Source: Octopus sinensis (Eukaryota). From it: a DNA stretch of 36,127 nucleotides. Positions within the stretch are counted from its first letter, which is position 1; each line of letters begins with the position of its first letter. The stretch lies in contig NW_021831928.1 in the NCBI RefSeq assembly GCF_006345805.1, positions 1-36,127 on the forward strand, given 5' to 3'. The notes under the pieces are model-generated. The model ran no database searches and was not told where the DNA came from. It worked only from the letters and a program-made list of their open reading frames with translations. The position numbers and the translations under genes are program-made. Below are positions 18,056 to 33,771 of the stretch, in pieces.

Positions 18056-18390
18056 ATGTTGACATTCAGAGAACTGTTTGTCTTCTGCTGTTTCTGTGTG
18101 ATTATCTTCTCGGATTCTATCCAATGTCGCGCCGCAGAACAAAGATATTCTCAAAACGAAACACACGAGAAGATCTCAGTATTCGCCAACACTTTGCTTC
18201 GAGTAAAAAATTTGGTCGCAGGCGCTGTAGTTGTGGTCAAGAATGACGAAGTAGTCTACAGACAAGGTTTTGGCCGACGGAACCTAAGCAGCGAAGCTAA
18301 AGTTGATAATAATACCTTATTTGGCATAGCTTCTTTGACGAAGGCATTTGGAGCGGCAACTCTTGTTAAAGTAATTGAGGAGATGAAAAA
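18056..18390 (+). CDS. Coding exon 1 of a secreted beta-lactamase/DD-peptidase-like serine hydrolase (signal peptide + SxxK motif)
   Basis: ATG at 18056 with A at -3. Hydrophobic Cys-rich N-terminus MLTFRELFVFCCFCVIIFSDSIQC. Family-typical GAVVVVKNDEVVYRQGFGRRN and TLFGIASLTKAF (S93-x-x-K96 at 18332-18343). Donor AA|GTAAGT at 18391, phase 2. Confidence 0.93.
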
Positions 18391-18934
18391 GTAAGTTAAT
18401 ATGTTTTATGTAATTTATTTATATGCTTCTTGAGGTTTTATTTGGTAAAACCCGTTGTTTGTCAGACAAAGTAAGTTGAACTTGTTTAATTATACCTCTC
18501 TATTTTCTGGGTTCAAATACCACCGAAATTGAGTCTGCTTTGACCCTTCTCGGGGGAACATGTGGCTATAAATCCAGTGTCTATTAAAGGTGTGTGTGTG
18601 TGTGTAGGGGGCTTCAATGGGTAGATTGGTTTGGGATCTACAGCATCAAGGAAGGACCAATGAATACCCGACGGACTCTTCGCTAAAACCAAAAAGATAA
18701 GAAAATTCTCAAGCCCCCTTAAATTTTGAGAGGCCATCTTAGTAGGGCCGTGCTTAAAGCAATCTCATTCCACTTTCTCTCGAAGGTCTTGCATAAATCT
18801 CTGATAATGTGTAGAAATTAAGTCACAGACTAGCGACCCCACATAAGTCACCTCTGATCAATCGGATCTATCATCAAAGACATTCCAACAGTGACTATAC
18901 CATTTTTTTATAGTTGGGCGTCTTCAGCTAGAGC

Positions 18935-19275
18935 TGGATTTGGTAGACGGAAACTGAAAGAAGCCCGTCGTATATACATACATATACTATATATATATAT
19001 ATATATATATATATATATATATTAATATATATATATATATATATATATATATATATATATATATATTTGTGTGTGTTGTTGCCTGTGTTGCTCCACCACC
19101 ACCGCTTGACAATTGGTGTTGGTGTGTTTACGTCCTCGTAACCTGGCGGTTCAGCAAAAGAGACCGATAGAGTAAGTACCAGGTTTAAAAAATAGAATAA
19201 GTATAGGGATCGATTCGTTCTCCTAAAATCCTTGAGGGTGATGCCACAGCATGGCCGCAGTCTCATGACTGAAAT
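18935..19275 (+). mobile_element. SINE family B, 5'-truncated, in intron 1
   Basis: ggatttggtagacggaaactgaaagaagcccgtcg, then a (TA)n tract, then accgcttgacaattggtgttgg...cagcatggccgcag tail. Confidence 0.75.
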
Positions 19276-19754
19276 GTGTGATGGTTAAACGATCACTTAT
19301 GATTCTTTTGTTTGTTTTTGTATATTTGCTCATACTCTCTATATATTATATGATATAAAATATCACATAATATATATTATGTGATATCTTATTAAAATAT
19401 CCCTGCATATCTCACCGTTCCGTTCAGTAGCAATGCTTATGAAAACAAATTATTTTTAAAACAAGGGATATCTAAAAGCCCTTAACTACTCGATGTTCTA
19501 CAAATACATTAAATTCGGGGAAAAAATCCTTAGAAAAAGCTCGAGGTCCACAGAGCACATTACAGTAACTTACCCACTCAAAGGGCCGCAGCACACCTTA
19601 CTGCCAACCTTTGGTCTTGTCAGAGGGCGAGTAGTCTTCAAAACCATTTTTAGGGATACGAGAGTTTTGGGAAGTTCCCTACTGACTGAAGATCTGGCCT
19701 TAATGTTATTGACAGTGTGGGTTTTCCTAAAGACATCCAAGAGCCAGGCAGTGG

Positions 19755-19921
19755 CAGGACCGGCCCTGGGGTTGCTGGCTCCCCGGGTAAGCTGAACTTC
19801 GGAGCCTTTACAAGTGTAATTTTTTAAAACTTTTACAAGAAGAGAAAGTGAAAATGTAGACTAAAAAGCACATGGCGTCCCGGGCGACTACCCGAGTTGC
19901 CGGTACCTTGAGCCGACCCTG
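19755..19921. mobile_element. hAT-type MITE
   Basis: Terminal inverted repeats caggaccggccc / gagccgaccctg (9/12 match). Flanked by 8-bp direct repeats ggcagtgg (19747-19754) and ggtggtgg (19922-19929). Confidence 0.6.
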
Positions 19922-20459
19922 GGTGGTGGTGTCAAGCTTGGGGGCGGGATTTAGGTTATCACACCGCTATTCTAGTCCATGCATGGGTCGCCTTTTCCGA
20001 GGGAGGGTGGGGTGTATGAGACAAGAATTATCATTAGACTGACACTACTATTAAAAGAATCCGAGATAATTTTTCGGTGGTGTCCCACAAGTCACGGTTT
20101 CGCCCATGACTGGTCGAGACACAGAAATTGTATATATAGTTAGAGGAGAGCTGTAACTGGAAAGTTACAGGGTTCATGCTCATAATACCCACAAAGGCCG
20201 TGAACTAATCTTAACAATGAAGAGAAACCGGATTACTGGCCTCAAATAGCAAAAAGACTTCAATCAAACTGTGTCGATCTCAACACTTGATACAGAAACA
20301 TTTGGTTCTAATCATAATATTGAGAATGATTTTGCAAAATGTTCTGAAGGTCGAAGTTTTAGATAATATTATCGTAAAATACATATAATGCAGATAAATG
20401 AAATAACACGAAAATAGAATTTATGAAAGACCAAAATAAATGTTGATAATTTGCAACAT

Positions 20460-20920
20460 TTGTATGTGTATATATATATATTATATATATAATATATTAT
20501 ATATATATATATATTATATATATATATAGATAATATATATATATATATAGATATATATATATATATATATATATATATATATATATCTATATAAGAGAGA
20601 GAGAGAGAGAGAGATATAGACAGATATAGATATATATAGATATATATAGATATACATATATATATACACACATATATATACGTAACTATATATACAATAC
20701 ACATATATATATATATATAAAGCATACATGTATATATATATATATATATTATATATATATATATATATATACATACACACGCACATGCACACATGCACAC
20801 ACATACACACACACAGACACCACACAAATACACACACCACACACACACACACAACACACACACACACACACACACACACACACACACACCACACACACAC
20901 AACACACATAATATTATATA
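20460..20920. repeat. (TA)n/(GA)n/(CA)n microsatellite
   Basis: Direct reading. Confidence 0.95.
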
Positions 20921-31502: not shown

Positions 31503-32090
31503 AAGGCGGTGAGCTGGCAGAAACGTTAGCACGCCGGGCGAAATGCTTAGCGGTATTTCGTCTGCGTTACGTTGTGAGTTCAAATTCCGCCGAGGTCGAC
31601 TTTGCCTTTCATCCTTTCGGGGTCGATAAATTAAGTACCAGTTACGCACTGGGGTCGATGTAATCGACTTAATACCTATGTCTGTCCTTGTTTGTTCCCT
31701 CTGTGTTTAGCCCCTTGTGTGTAATAAAGAAATAGAAATAGGTATTTCGTGTGCGTTACGTTCTGAGTTCAAATTCCGCCGAGGTCGACTTTGCCTTTCA
31801 TCCTTTCGGGGTCGATAAATTAAGTACCAGTTACGCACTGGGGTCGATGTAATCGACTTAATACCTATGTCTGTCCTTGTTTGTCCCCTCTGTGTTTAGC
31901 CCCTTGTGAGTAGTAAAGAAATAGGTATTTCACCCGTTGGTACGTTCTGAGTTCAATATCCGCTGAGGTCGATTTTACCTTTCGATAAAATAAGTACCCG
32001 TTAAACACTGGGGTCGATGTAATCGATTCATCCCCTCCTCCAGAATCGCTGCCCCTGTGGCAAAATTTGAAGCTATGATTATTATCATTA
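31503..32090 (+). mobile_element. SINE family A trimer
   Basis: Full unit 31503-~31740, a near-identical headless unit 31741-~31925, and a more diverged third unit to ~32085. Confidence 0.85.
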
Positions 32091-32099
32091 TTATTATTA

Positions 32100-32470
32100 T
32101 TAACTTTTTCAAGTTTTACTTGAAAAGGAAGTTGAGGGTGAAGAGGGAAGTTTTGACTTGTAGCAAGTTTATTGAAAGGTGGGTGAATGTTGGAAGAACA
32201 CCCAGTGGGAAAGGACCAATTCTGAGCGTGCACCTGTAAAAAAAAAATGGTGAGGAGAAGGGCTCTTGCCCTGTTGTTCAGCTACCCGTGGCTTTTGTGG
32301 GTTTTTCGACGAGGACCTTAAAGAGGACTCCCTATTGGGAGTTTTAATTTGTTCAGTTTTAATTATTACATTGTGTACCCGCGAAAACCCATTGTGTCGT
32401 CCAGTTTTTGTCTTTTATGTTGTATGTCATTTAATGTTTTGTTTGTGACCTCTTGTGGCTAATAAAAGGA
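32100..32470 (+). mobile_element. Probable L1/Tx1-like 3' end
   Basis: FFKFYLKRKLRVKREVLTCSKFIERWVNV...* followed by a T-rich UTR, then ctcttgtggctaataaaagga and a TAT tail. Confidence 0.5.
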
Positions 32471-32715
32471 TAAATTATTATTATTATTATTATTATTAAT
32501 ATTATTATTATAATAATTTATTATTGTTGTTGTTGTTATTATTATTATTGTTGTTGTTATTATTATTATTATCATTGTTGTTGTTGTTGTTGTTATTATT
32601 ATTATTATTATTATTATTATTATTATTATTAGTAGTAGTAGTAGTAGTAGTAGTAGTAGTAGTAGTAGTAGTAGTAGTAGTAGTAGTAGTAGTAGTAGTT
32701 GTAGTAGTAGTAGTA

Positions 32716-33120
32716 AAGCAGCGATCTGGCTGAATCGTTAGCACGCCAGACAAAATGCTTCGTGGCATTTCGTACATCTTCACGTTCTGAGTTCAAATTC
32801 CGTCGAGGTCTACTTTGCGTTTCAACCTTCCGTGGGTCAATAAAATAAGTTGAGCACTGGAGGAGGGTGGTTCGATGTAATCGACACATCCCCTCCTCCC
32901 ACCCAAAATTGCTTCCCTTGTGGCAAAATTTGAAACCGCTGGACGAAATGCTTAGCGGTATTTCGTCCGTTTTTCTGTTCTCAGTTCAAATTCTGCCGAG
33001 GTCGACTTTGCCTTCCTTTCAAAGTCGATTGCACCGATTGAACACTGGGATTGATGTAATCGATTTACCTCCTACCCCGATATTGCTGGCCTTGTGCCAC
33101 AATTTGAAATTAATATTATC
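32716..33120 (+). mobile_element. Two diverged SINE family A units just upstream of exon 5
   Basis: gatctggctgaatcgttagcacgcc...gagttcaaattccgtcgagg. A second unit from ~32940 (cgaaatgcttagcggtatttcg). Confidence 0.75.
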
Positions 33121-33148
33121 GCTTGTTTTCCTTTTTGTATATTTTCAG

Positions 33149-33771
33149 GATATCCCATTATAGTACACACGGGAACAAGCTGGGGAGATGCTTCAATTTT
33201 GCTCCTTTTCCCAGAAGAAAAATTAGCAGTCTTCGGTGTCCTTACTGGCTCAGATACCAAACATTTGAAAAGAATATTATTAGCGCAATACGTGGCTGAT
33301 CTATATCTTGGTTTTGAACCCTGGATAAATGCGACTTCCATAAAGGATTTTGTAGTTCCAAAGCACAAATCCAAGTGTCCAAGACCAGCTGCAAGAAGAA
33401 GCACCATTGGTTTGTTTCCCAGAAATTTCCCCGAGTGTCGGAAAACAATTACGAAACCAAACAATATTAGTATCTTACCAAGTAATTTTTCTAGCTATGA
33501 CGGAATCTATAACAATATATTGTGGGGGAACATTACTGTGACTTACAACACGGAATCACAAGGACTATTCTTCACATACGGTTTTGCAACATTTCAATTG
33601 CTTCCAAGATCGCGAAAACACAGAAGTTTTGCAGCAAAAGGAATTGGAGAAATGTGTTTTATGAGACTGAGTTCGATAAATTTCGAATATACTCGGAACA
33701 AAGGAATTACATCGATGACAATTCCGTCCTTCGAGAGGTCAATGCCACCGACGTTTTTGAAAATAAGTTAA
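33149..33771 (+). CDS. Coding exon 5 (last) of the beta-lactamase-like gene (HTG motif + C-terminal domain)
   Basis: Acceptor ctttttgtatattttcag|GA in phase 1. Encodes GYPIIVHTGTSWG (HTG at 33166-33174), LLLFPEEKLAVFGVLT, and a C-terminal domain beginning near YDGIYNNILWGNITV. Stop TAA ends at 33771. Total CDS 1614 nt, in frame. Confidence 0.92.

Follow-up and report, generated by a model that had tools for sequence, protein, structure and literature searches.

The window analysed here, a whole contig of 36127 bp from Octopus sinensis, carries on its plus strand a gene of five exons between positions 18056 and 33771. Its exact spliced reconstruction gives a coding sequence of 1614 nt, encoding 537 amino acids followed by TAA, with no internal stop codons. 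The introns all run from GT to AG (the exon 1 donor is GTAAGT), measure 7525, 399, 2748 and 3430 bp (14102 bp in sum) and contain many microsatellites and short interspersed repeats. The features of the locus are as follows.

18018 to 18025, plus strand: TATA-like element TATATAAG, 31-38 bp 5' of the ATG, read from the sequence
18056 to 18390, plus strand: exon 1, residues 1-111 plus 2 nt, with the start codon, the hydrophobic N-terminus and S93-L-T-K96
18056 to 18127, plus strand: signal-peptide-like hydrophobic N-terminus, residues 1-24, from hydropathy
18332 to 18343, plus strand: S93-L-T-K96 motif, in exon 1
18391 to 25915, plus strand: intron 1, 7525 bp, phase 2, with abundant microsatellites and SINE-like repeats
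25916 to 26083, plus strand: exon 2, residues 112-167 plus parts of the flanking codons
26084 to 26482, plus strand: intron 2, 399 bp, phase 2, with a short ORF inside
26483 to 26746, plus strand: exon 3, residues 168-255, with Y185-S-N187 inside
26532 to 26540, plus strand: Y185-S-N187 motif, in exon 3
26747 to 29494, plus strand: intron 3, 2748 bp, phase 2
29495 to 29718, plus strand: exon 4, residues 256-330
29719 to 33148, plus strand: intron 4, 3430 bp, phase 1
30666 to 30923, minus strand: retroelement-like ORF fragment, within intron 4
33149 to 33771, plus strand: exon 5, residues 331-537, with TAA at 33769-33771
33166 to 33174, plus strand: H337-T-G339 motif, in exon 5
33258, plus strand: end of the PF00144 domain, residue 367, in exon 5
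Residues 405-440, plus strand: low-confidence linker, in exon 5
33478 to 33768, plus strand: C-terminal DUF3471-like lipocalin barrel, residues ~441-537, in exon 5

The TATA-like element, a second copy of which lies at 17926-17933, is a consensus match only. The short ORF in intron 2, which we take to resemble the C-terminus of a mariner transposase, gave no significant match in a Pfam search, and the retroelement-like fragment in intron 4 gave no match in such a search. The locus is collinear among Octopus species, and its neighbour is an animal BTB/Kelch gene.

The reconstruction bears out the original prediction of an intact, spliced, five-exon gene of 537 codons. A chance ORF is excluded, since the product matches PF00144 with E = 3.8e-45 and the identical model is already an NCBI protein ("protein flp-like [Octopus sinensis]", 100% identity over 537 aa). 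Gene and protein are thus already annotated in RefSeq, alongside dozens of annotated family members in marine invertebrates, and the novelty first implied for the locus was too high.

The ORF is also intact in O. vulgaris and O. bimaculoides, with dN/dS of 0.13 against the former and of 0.43, moderate constraint only, against the latter (synonymous excess, p about 3e-4). Purifying selection, as originally proposed, is therefore confirmed, and the catalytic residues are kept under it. We consider it highly improbable that the gene is an unexpressed pseudogene or a prediction artefact that stayed open by chance. The canonical poly(A) signals AATAAA and ATTAAA are absent from the 1 kb 3' of the stop codon, as such a reading might have it; against it, the ORF and all splice sites are kept across three Octopus species as well as in Argonauta and a tandem paralog, dN/dS is below 1, and the exons are 96.6-99.8% identical to those of O. 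vulgaris, compared with about 91-97.6% for collinear locus blocks that include introns. Moreover, contigs without introns, assembled from sequencing runs, contain a relative at 43% identity, which groups with the cephalopods.

Domains, fold and predicted secretion

The PF00144 match places the protein in peptidase family S12, which has the fold of penicillin-binding proteins and class C beta-lactamases, in agreement with the beta-lactamase fold first proposed for it. S93-L-T-K96, Y185-S-N187 and H337-T-G339, the three active-site motifs already recognised at these residues, coincide with the catalytic columns when the family is aligned. The protein has two domains, the PF00144 catalytic domain being followed by a C-terminal lipocalin-like barrel homologous to DUF3471. 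An AlphaFold2 model (pLDDT 85.3, pTM 0.83) shows a short helix and eight strands at residues 444-535, and the profile of this domain aligns with a bacterial DUF3471 profile, of which 12/12 sequences match PF11954, with an hhalign probability of 96.5% and E 1e-9; precomputed PF11954 matches exist for several of the family's mollusc members. The earlier reading of the locus did not include this domain.

A Kyte-Doolittle scan of the whole protein (19-residue mean >1.6) found residues 1-27 as its sole hydrophobic stretch and no C-terminal hydrophobic tail or membrane anchor. Because hydrophobicity is confined to the N-terminus, and because oyster gigasin-6 has been shown experimentally to be secreted and heavily glycosylated (PMC9456362), the octopus product is probably secreted by way of an N-terminal signal peptide, the latter judged from hydropathy. 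It is probably also heavily N-glycosylated, and it carries 11 N-x-S/T sequons; the count of 10 given originally falls one short of this total, which includes N112-V-S straddling the exon 1/2 junction. Both expectations, secretion and glycosylation, had been raised beforehand and are supported by these features.

The top PDB match in Foldseek is Pab87 (2qmi), an archaeal peptidase specific for D-peptides, with both domains aligned over 523-529 columns, followed by Lip3 DL-peptidase, the esterase IS11, SurE, S. aureus Flp, LACTB and R61 DD-peptidase. A PDB sequence search gave the same order (2qmi 6.6e-20, 4gdn 2.8e-17, LACTB 4e-12). That the gene might be a LACTB ortholog, or encode a LACTB-type mitochondrial protease, is hardly credible: the LACTB match is significant and a database gives the label "LACTB" to one family member from Branchiostoma, but the score falls well under those of Pab87 and Flp, the alignment covers the catalytic domain only (390-412 columns) and, in the octopus protein, the N-terminus resembles a signal peptide and a DUF3471 domain is present. 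The original distinction from LACTB thus stands.

A bilaterian family that includes gigasin-6

By sequence comparison, the octopus gene is a cephalopod member of the gigasin-6 or "flp-like" family, which we found in molluscs, brachiopods, annelids, hemichordates, amphioxus and a millipede (at least six animal phyla) under the database names gigasin-6-like, GIGA6-like, "protein flp-like", PBP4-like and AmpH-like. A Saccostrea "gigasin-6-like" protein is 34% identical to it over 493 aa (BLASTP, E 5e-90), and homology extends, at 29% identity, to the sequence carrying the published C. gigas gigasin-6 peptides. The original treatment of gigasin-6 as a separate comparator must accordingly be dropped, the octopus protein being an end-to-end homologue of the gigasin-6-like proteins.

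Three of the four octopus introns occur at the same position and phase in bivalve, brachiopod, amphioxus and hemichordate genes. These introns, at alignment columns 175, 267 and 358 (phases 2, 2 and 1), are common to Octopus, Argonauta, Mactra, Lingula, Branchiostoma and Ptychodera, the position of intron 2 being common to molluscs, Lingula, Branchiostoma and Ptychodera and those of introns 3 and 4 extending from molluscs to deuterostomes; intron 1 (column 113, phase 2) is common to molluscs and Lingula. Since three positions and phases are common with deuterostomes, the gene is older than the divergence of protostomes and deuterostomes, before which any bacterial transfer would also have to have taken place. 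In a neighbour-joining bootstrap tree, whose deep nodes are weak (54-63%), all 58 animal sequences group together (58%), the cephalopods form one clade (100%) and the octopus gene is nested among the molluscs.

The original prediction of an old bacterial transfer with later gain of introns is not supported by this position within a broad animal clade and by the three to four shared introns. The original account had itself named such a placement as refuting the transfer. A transfer from bacteria to molluscs or cephalopods after the bilaterian radiation, followed by intron gain, we regard as extremely unlikely: the fold and two-domain architecture are commonest in bacteria, where identity reaches 28-33%, but such a transfer would have to account for three introns in common with deuterostome genes and four with brachiopod and bivalve genes, for the spread of the family over so many phyla, for the grouping of the animal sequences and for the collinear locus with its animal neighbour. 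On this evidence the family has passed vertically through the bilaterians and did not arrive recently from bacteria. Possible origins are both a transfer that preceded the bilaterian ancestor and descent from the eukaryotic ancestor; protist homologs occur in Chromera, Ancoracysta and Muranothrix.

Among the 58 animal members the catalytic columns hold Ser in 54/56, Lys in 55/56, Tyr in 55/58, His in 58/58 and Gly in 58/58. In the sequence bearing the published gigasin-6 peptides, Ser and Lys of SxxK and His of HTG are gone, and the catalytic Ser is missing in two Pinctada members. Gigasin-6, the single member of the family to have been studied by experiment, is a shell-matrix glycoprotein and larval-settlement cue (PMC9456362, PMC5854119), and its lack of catalytic Ser, Lys and His implies that the family is able to function without catalysis. 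The octopus product could likewise be secreted as a glycoprotein that catalyses nothing and serves in structure, adhesion or signalling, its fold being only a binding scaffold. We think this unlikely, as most animal members, including O. sinensis, O. vulgaris, O. bimaculoides and Argonauta, keep all three motifs intact and the octopus has no shell matrix for such a protein to join.

Proposed activity and comparison with known systems

The best explanation as a whole, to which we assign a probability of roughly 0.75, is that the gene is the O. sinensis ortholog of a vertically inherited bilaterian family and encodes a soluble, secreted, two-domain S12 hydrolase with D-amino-acid substrates. The signal peptide would direct the product into the secretory pathway, where heavy N-glycosylation is probable; as it has no membrane anchor, the product (about 58 kDa, basic pI) would then leave the cell in soluble form. 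Catalysis would proceed through an acyl-enzyme: Ser93 would be the nucleophile, with Lys96 and Tyr185 activating it, and the strand with H337-T-G would line the substrate and oxyanion site. As in Pab87, the barrel domain probably covers the substrate pocket or gives it its shape.

Most likely, then, the product is an active extracellular serine hydrolase for peptides or esters bearing D-amino acids, these being the likeliest substrates because recognition of D-amino-acid residues is common to all of the nearest enzymes that have been characterised (Pab87, PMC2651629; Lip3/Lip7, PMC12903863). Candidates are bacterial cell-wall peptides or non-ribosomal peptides with D-amino acids, the substrate class being uncertain, as esterases and peptide cyclases are found among the structural neighbours too. 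We do not think that beta-lactams are the substrate. A true beta-lactamase, shielding the animal or its symbionts from beta-lactam antibiotics, would agree with the PF00144 match, the SxxK, YxN and HTG motifs and an AmpC-like fold (target-normalised TM-score about 0.76-0.78); it is nonetheless improbable, given a marginal resemblance in sequence to class C enzymes (E about 3e-4 to 7e-4), a third motif that reads HTG against the KTG of class C, and nearest characterised relatives that are peptidases, esterases and cyclases.

Among known systems Pab87 of Pyrococcus abyssi, the founding "CubicO" peptidase, is the best PDB match to the octopus hydrolase in both sequence and structure, with an S12 catalytic domain, a C-terminal lipocalin-type eight-stranded barrel and SxxK, YxN and HxG motifs, at about 18% identity in the structural alignment. 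It differs in being a cytoplasmic octamer from a hyperthermophile. The CubicO-specific motifs YAEAF/L, FFYLN and C-terminal ERY are missing from the octopus protein, which has instead a predicted signal peptide, sequons and a linker of 36 low-confidence residues. Bacterial and fungal proteins of the "CubicO group peptidase (beta-lactamase class C family)" with PF00144 plus PF11954 (DUF3471) share its architecture, its length (about 500-530 aa) and N-terminal signal sequences at 25-33% identity, but their genes are intron-less, and their function is equally uncharacterised. Animal and protist sequences carry a distinctive motif, PW-L/I-N-x-S/T, in the linker that follows the catalytic domain, and end in a PP-x-F-x-K C-terminus, both of which the bacterial ones lack. 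S. aureus Flp (FmtA-like protein, 4gdn) is similar over the catalytic domain (E 2.8e-17, target-normalised TM 0.82-0.85) but has no C-terminal barrel, and the name "protein flp-like" is an automated one taken from this best match and does not denote orthology. LACTB, which represents the fold in animal mitochondria and is broadly conserved, shares the superfamily and the three motifs, yet it is a much weaker match, lacks the DUF3471 domain and is a filament-forming mitochondrial protease; its lineage among the metazoan penicillin-binding-protein homologs is a different one (PMC2266909), described in a 2008 survey whose sampling did not extend to molluscs, amphioxus or hemichordates.

Members of the octopus protein's own family are Crassostrea gigas gigasin-6 (UniProt P86789) and the mollusc proteins called "gigasin-6-like", GIGA6-like and "protein flp-like", with end-to-end homology and the same PF00144 plus DUF3471-like architecture. 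These proteins also have, as in octopus, an N-terminal signal sequence and several N-glycosylation sequons, the member from the bivalve Mactra has all four octopus intron positions, and one experimentally mapped N-glycosylation site of gigasin-6 (…LLGNGS…) lies in the segment aligned with the octopus sequon …LLNGNTS… (PMC9456362). Gigasin-6 proper, with its lost catalytic residues, serves as a shell-matrix protein and settlement cue; the octopus protein, in contrast, keeps all of these residues in an animal without a mineralised shell.

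The octopus gene and its surroundings

Exact splicing of the raw window sequence rebuilt the gene as five exons:

18056–18390, + strand, exon 1
25916–26083, + strand, exon 2
26483–26746, + strand, exon 3
29495–29718, + strand, exon 4
33149–33771, + strand, exon 5

The four introns, each bounded by GT..AG, measure 7525, 399, 2748 and 3430 bp, and the joined reading frame of 1614 nt comprises 537 codons plus a TAA stop with zero internal stops. This reconstruction confirms the original prediction of an intact, spliced five-exon gene, and the three motifs it had read from the protein (S93-L-T-K96, Y185-S-N187 and H337-T-G339) were found as described. 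It was also right that the protein carries multiple N-x-S/T sequons, although we count 11 rather than the ten it gave; one of them, N112-V-S, spans the first splice junction. By hydropathy, the N-terminus (MLTFRELFVFCCFCVIIFSDSIQC…) is the sole strongly hydrophobic stretch of the protein and there is no hydrophobic tail at the C-terminus. Beyond the stop codon the 3′ flank passes directly into CA/CT/TA microsatellites, with no AATAAA or ATTAAA within ~1 kb (33772–34800).

A record named 'protein flp-like [Octopus sinensis]' is 100% identical to the reconstructed protein over its full length and derives from the same contig, which is the only contig on which the exact protein is listed in the sequence collection searched. 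A tblastn search of the window returned the five exons only and no second copy of the gene. The sequence record of the gene pre-exists, and the gene itself is an uncharacterised member of a known family. Literature searches found nothing relevant on this protein that was specific to octopus.

Most of the intron sequence and of the upstream 18 kb is made up of microsatellites and short interspersed repeats. No RNA gene was detected by Rfam across the window, and Pfam searches of nine longer or transposon-like open reading frames (ORFs) outside the exons returned no match except one sub-threshold chance match, to the ORF inside intron 2.

Repeats and ORF fragments in the window
2883–3117 (−), 11596–11831, 23485–23688, 28995–29198; both orientations; SINE-like dispersed repeat of ~200–235 nt, copies 80–90% identical
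13865–14417 and 29770–30328; repeat family, copies 89–92% identical
24647–25061, 31509–31924 and 32722–33028; repeat family
12196–12768 and 30666–30923; both − strand; ORF fragments alike by eye (…DIV…C.LIDV…KE.EK…Y.D..IE…W.L…P.V/I-IGAL…)
26089–26340; + strand; 83-aa ORF inside intron 2, ending …FFESKSGDFSQQDIENLVERWEEVVNNIID
1793–1869, 11942–11993, 12259–12310, 13878–13924, 29768–29842, 31104–31151, 32593–32631; long (TTA)n/(ATT)n arrays

The two similar ORF fragments, which have no Pfam match, we take to resemble the C-terminal part of a retrotransposon ORF. An ORF at 2975–3580 (+) is presumably of LINE-tail type, and the ORF in intron 2 looks similar to the C-terminal end of a mariner-type transposase. 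Arrays of the (TA)n, (CA)n and (TATC)n types are also numerous throughout the window, and together with the trinucleotide arrays these microsatellites account for its numerous spurious long low-complexity ORFs.

An old bilaterian family with shared introns

A word-indexed search with a profile built from an octopus-centred alignment added zero new animal matches, and an exhaustive profile search was therefore needed. This returned 8166 proteins at E ≤ 1e-30, whose top representatives were named by cluster look-up, and it was followed by a profile search seeded with bivalve sequences. Members were found in gastropods (Haliotis, Patella, Lottia, Physella, Lymnaea, Babylonia, Gigantopelta, Littorina and Batillaria), in bivalves (Mactra, Pecten, Argopecten, Mizuhopecten, Pinctada, Crassostrea, Saccostrea, Ostrea, Mytilus, Mya, Mercenaria, Dreissena, Sinanodonta, Tegillarca and Solemya) and in cephalopods, as well as in the brachiopod Lingula, the annelids Owenia, Dimorphilus and Ridgeia, the hemichordates Saccoglossus and Ptychodera, amphioxus and a millipede. 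Homologs also occur in the protists Chromera, Ancoracysta and Muranothrix; no vertebrate or insect member turned up in these family searches. In NCBI, members of the family go by names such as 'gigasin-6-like', 'GIGA6-like protein', 'protein flp-like', 'penicillin-binding protein 4-like' and 'AmpH-like'.

The original prediction had set the octopus protein apart from gigasin-6, a beta-lactamase-related protein of oyster shell. That contrast was mistaken. Alignment of the octopus protein with a Saccostrea 'gigasin-6-like' protein runs from end to end (34% identity over 493 aa, E 5e-90), and its alignment with P0197 covers 445 aa (29% identity, E 1e-56); P0197 is a retrieved sequence that contains a published Crassostrea gigas gigasin-6 tryptic peptide exactly (peptides from PMC9456362). 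The octopus protein and gigasin-6 thus belong to the same family.

Amphioxus has a second member of 587 aa lying head to head with the first (Branchiostoma CM027637.1, 1–3277, −), Ptychodera carries four or more copies on a single chromosome, and a two-domain fusion protein of the family is encoded in Haliotis; from these cases tandem duplication is evidently common in it. A metagenome protein scoring 554 bits (P0145) was rejected as a close bacterial relative, being itself a tandem two-domain protein whose domains score about 270–285 bits each, the ordinary bacterial level. We also found a homolog of 527 aa that shares 43% identity with the octopus protein, is intron-less on 2.5-kb contigs of the SRR8281672 and SRR8281685 assemblies and groups with the cephalopods at 100% bootstrap; these contigs are presumably assembled transcripts from another cephalopod.

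To place the introns in one alignment, seven family genes were spliced exactly at their genomic loci, a set that leaves out the Saccostrea gigasin-6-like gene. The introns of the octopus gene fall at codons 112, 168, 256 and 331 in phases 2, 2, 2 and 1. All four columns and phases are common to the octopus gene, its Octopus paralog, Argonauta, Mactra and Lingula, and Branchiostoma and Ptychodera have the last three of the four, matching in both column and phase. Branchiostoma has two additional introns of its own and Lingula one. Such sharing is expected only if protostomes and deuterostomes both inherited the gene, with three or more of these introns already in place, from their last common ancestor.

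In a neighbour-joining tree of 98 sequences (482 columns, 100 bootstraps) all 58 animal sequences fall in one clade (58% support), followed by a mollusc-only clade (54%); support for the cephalopods is 100%, and the octopus gene falls within the molluscs. Since support for the deep nodes is weak, it is the introns that carry the argument for vertical inheritance. The original prediction also proposed that the gene may descend from an old bacterial transfer. Taken together, and by the criterion that the original prediction itself set, the shared introns and the animal clade refute such a transfer at any date after the bilaterian ancestor; the family may go back either to a pre-bilaterian transfer or to the eukaryotic ancestor. 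For 'bacterial-looking' animal genes such as this one, shared introns provide an argument against recent transfer that does not depend on a tree. The octopus gene is real, but it is an ordinary annotated member of a widespread family.

The locus in other Octopus species

The part of the window from position 8985 onwards is collinear, at 91–97.6% identity, with O. vulgaris chromosome OX597825.1. All five exons of the O. vulgaris ortholog are intact and its product differs from that of O. sinensis by four residues. The 827-aa protein annotated in O. vulgaris wrongly joins exons 1–4 of this ortholog to the entire tandem paralog, which lies ~11 kb downstream (OX597825.1, 10001–45957 examined). The O. 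bimaculoides ortholog precedes the same paralog by ~6.4 kb (CM046612.1); its exons 1, 3, 4 and 5 are open, and exon 2 lies in a stretch broken by assembly gaps, which cuts the annotated 349-aa model short. A BTB/Kelch gene comes next after the paralog in both species.

The tandem paralog is ~60% identical to the octopus gene, shares its four introns and would lie past the 3′ end of the window. The O. bimaculoides paralog (P0005) reads Y-S-S in the second catalytic motif, where the octopus protein has Y-S-N (N187), so the tandem copies may differ in activity.

Nei–Gojobori comparison gave a dN/dS of 0.13 against O. vulgaris (9.5 synonymous and 4.5 non-synonymous changes) and of 0.43 against O. 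bimaculoides (34.5 and 54.5), with a synonymous excess in both comparisons (p about 3e-4). Exons are 96.6–99.8% identical to O. vulgaris, as against about 91–97.6% for the collinear blocks of the whole locus, introns included. These comparisons support the purifying selection claimed in the original prediction, though the constraint is moderate.

The four replacements between O. sinensis and O. vulgaris (S186N, A232E, E233K and V240I) all fall in exon 3 (26483–26746), as do most of the nucleotide differences; this exon is 96.6% identical between the species, compared with >99% for the others. Local relaxation of constraint, positive selection or gene conversion could each have produced this pattern.

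Catalytic residues, possible function and comparison with known enzymes

Pfam matches PF00144 to residues 55–367 of the octopus protein at 154.9 bits (curated cut-off 27; E 3.8e-45), which bears out the fold class originally suggested. The SxxK, YxN and HTG motifs occur in order and in the catalytic alignment columns, which are conserved across the 98 family sequences. By these sequence criteria the octopus protein is a member of PF00144/MEROPS S12. An AlphaFold2 model built on a 20-sequence alignment reached a pLDDT of 85.3 and a pTM of 0.83, with low confidence at the signal-peptide junction, in one loop and in the linker at residues 405–440. The model matches the penicillin-binding-protein fold of R61, Flp, ClbP and AmpC with target-normalised TM scores of 0.76–0.85. 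Beyond the linker, residues 444–535 are modelled as a short helix and eight beta-strands forming a lipocalin-like barrel. Pfam gave no direct DUF3471 match on the octopus protein at E ≤ 0.1; a profile of animal C-termini aligned to one of bacterial C-termini with an hhalign probability of 96.5% (E 1e-9), the 12 bacterial sequences in the latter all being bona fide DUF3471 (PF11954), and several mollusc relatives have a precomputed PF11954 match.

Ser93, Lys96, Tyr185, Asn187 and His337-Thr-Gly of the octopus protein all sit in catalytic columns, and these residues are largely kept among the animal members (Ser in 54/56, Lys in 55/56, Tyr in 55/58, His and Gly each in 58/58). Gigasin-6 (P0197) has lost the catalytic Ser and Lys and the His of HTG, and two Pinctada proteins (P0159 and P0160) have lost the Ser. 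These losses suggest that the shell-matrix branch of the family is made up of pseudoenzymes, and they fit an earlier proposal (PMC5854119) that gigasin-6 is a lactamase-like protein that has been inactivated. Oyster gigasin-6 has been found experimentally to be heavily glycosylated and extracellular (PMC9456362).

A hydrophobic N-terminus, as judged by hydropathy only, is common to the octopus protein and nearly all family members. Many non-cephalopod members (P0008, P0142, P0009, P0143, P0010, P0147, P0152, P0158, P0161, P0166 and P0174), including those of Mactra, Physella, Lymnaea, Lottia, Babylonia, Lingula, Saccoglossus, Owenia and Branchiostoma, also end in a short hydrophobic tail resembling a GPI-anchor signal. 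The tail is absent from the cephalopod, Pecten, Patella and Pinctada proteins. Its distribution suggests that the ancestral form of the family may have been a surface-tethered ectoenzyme.

The structural ranking places Pab87, the Pyrococcus abyssi CubicO peptidase, first and aligned over both domains, ahead of Lip3 DL-peptidase, IS11 esterase, the SurE and Ulm16 peptide cyclases, Flp, LACTB, R61 DD-peptidase, ClbP and AmpC. Among PDB sequences Pab87 again comes first (2qmi, E 6.6e-20), with S. aureus Flp (2.8e-17) and LACTB (4e-12) after it. In Pab87 the S12 peptidase domain is followed by a lipocalin domain at the C-terminal end, and the enzyme breaks down D-amino-acid-containing peptides (PMC2651629); Lip3 and Lip7 cleave D-L peptide bonds of lipopeptides (PMC12903863).

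We infer that the octopus product would enter the ER, be N-glycosylated and be secreted as a soluble protein, and that Ser93 would form an acyl-enzyme with a peptide or ester substrate, the barrel helping to shape the substrate pocket as in Pab87. By analogy with the structural neighbours, a D-amino-acid residue is probably part of the substrate, and bacterial cell-wall stem peptides and non-ribosomal peptides would be candidates; this is the weakest step. Carried further, the cephalopod copies, having lost the GPI-like tail and kept the catalytic set, may be soluble secreted hydrolases specific for D-amino-acid residues. Their role could be directed at microbial peptides, breaking down those of bacterial cell walls or of non-ribosomal origin in mucus, saliva or egg coats, or at the animal's own D-amino-acid peptides, processing or inactivating them. 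We regard this reading as speculative and put its probability at roughly 0.15. If it is true, either role would give this animal family its first assigned enzymatic function.

The family is an ancient and poorly understood bilaterian lineage whose members are hydrolases, secreted or tethered to the cell surface, built on a penicillin-binding-protein fold, and the family's sole studied member, oyster gigasin-6, is by all appearances a catalytically dead shell protein. Intact members such as the octopus gene are a natural place to ask what job the ancestral enzyme does in animals, be it handling bacterial cell-wall debris, defence against microbial peptides or the metabolism of D-amino-acid peptides.

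Peitsaro et al. (2008) recognised four metazoan lineages of penicillin-binding-protein homologs (LACTB, LACTB-like 1, LACTB-like 2 and an esterase-like lineage) in a survey that sampled no molluscs, amphioxus or hemichordates (PMC2266909). We rejected orthology with LACTB, which is marked by mitochondrial targeting and has no extra C-terminal domain, whereas the octopus protein has a signal-peptide-like N-terminus and a DUF3471-like domain and matches LACTB less well than Pab87 (E 4e-12 versus 6.6e-20). Nor is it a class C beta-lactamase of the AmpC type: its third motif is HTG, not KTG, and AmpC-type chains match it at E 3.6e-4 to 7.4e-4 only. The CubicO proteases (the Pab87 family in the sense of Delfosse et al., 2009) are marked by a cubic octamer with an internal chamber and by D-stereospecific exopeptidase activity. 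The octopus protein has none of their three specific motifs (YAEAF/L, FFYLN and a C-terminal ERY), reading YVYSN at the second and ending in LKIS, and was therefore rejected as a CubicO protease in the strict sense. Like Pab87 it combines an S12 domain with a C-terminal lipocalin domain, and the resemblance between the two is architectural only.
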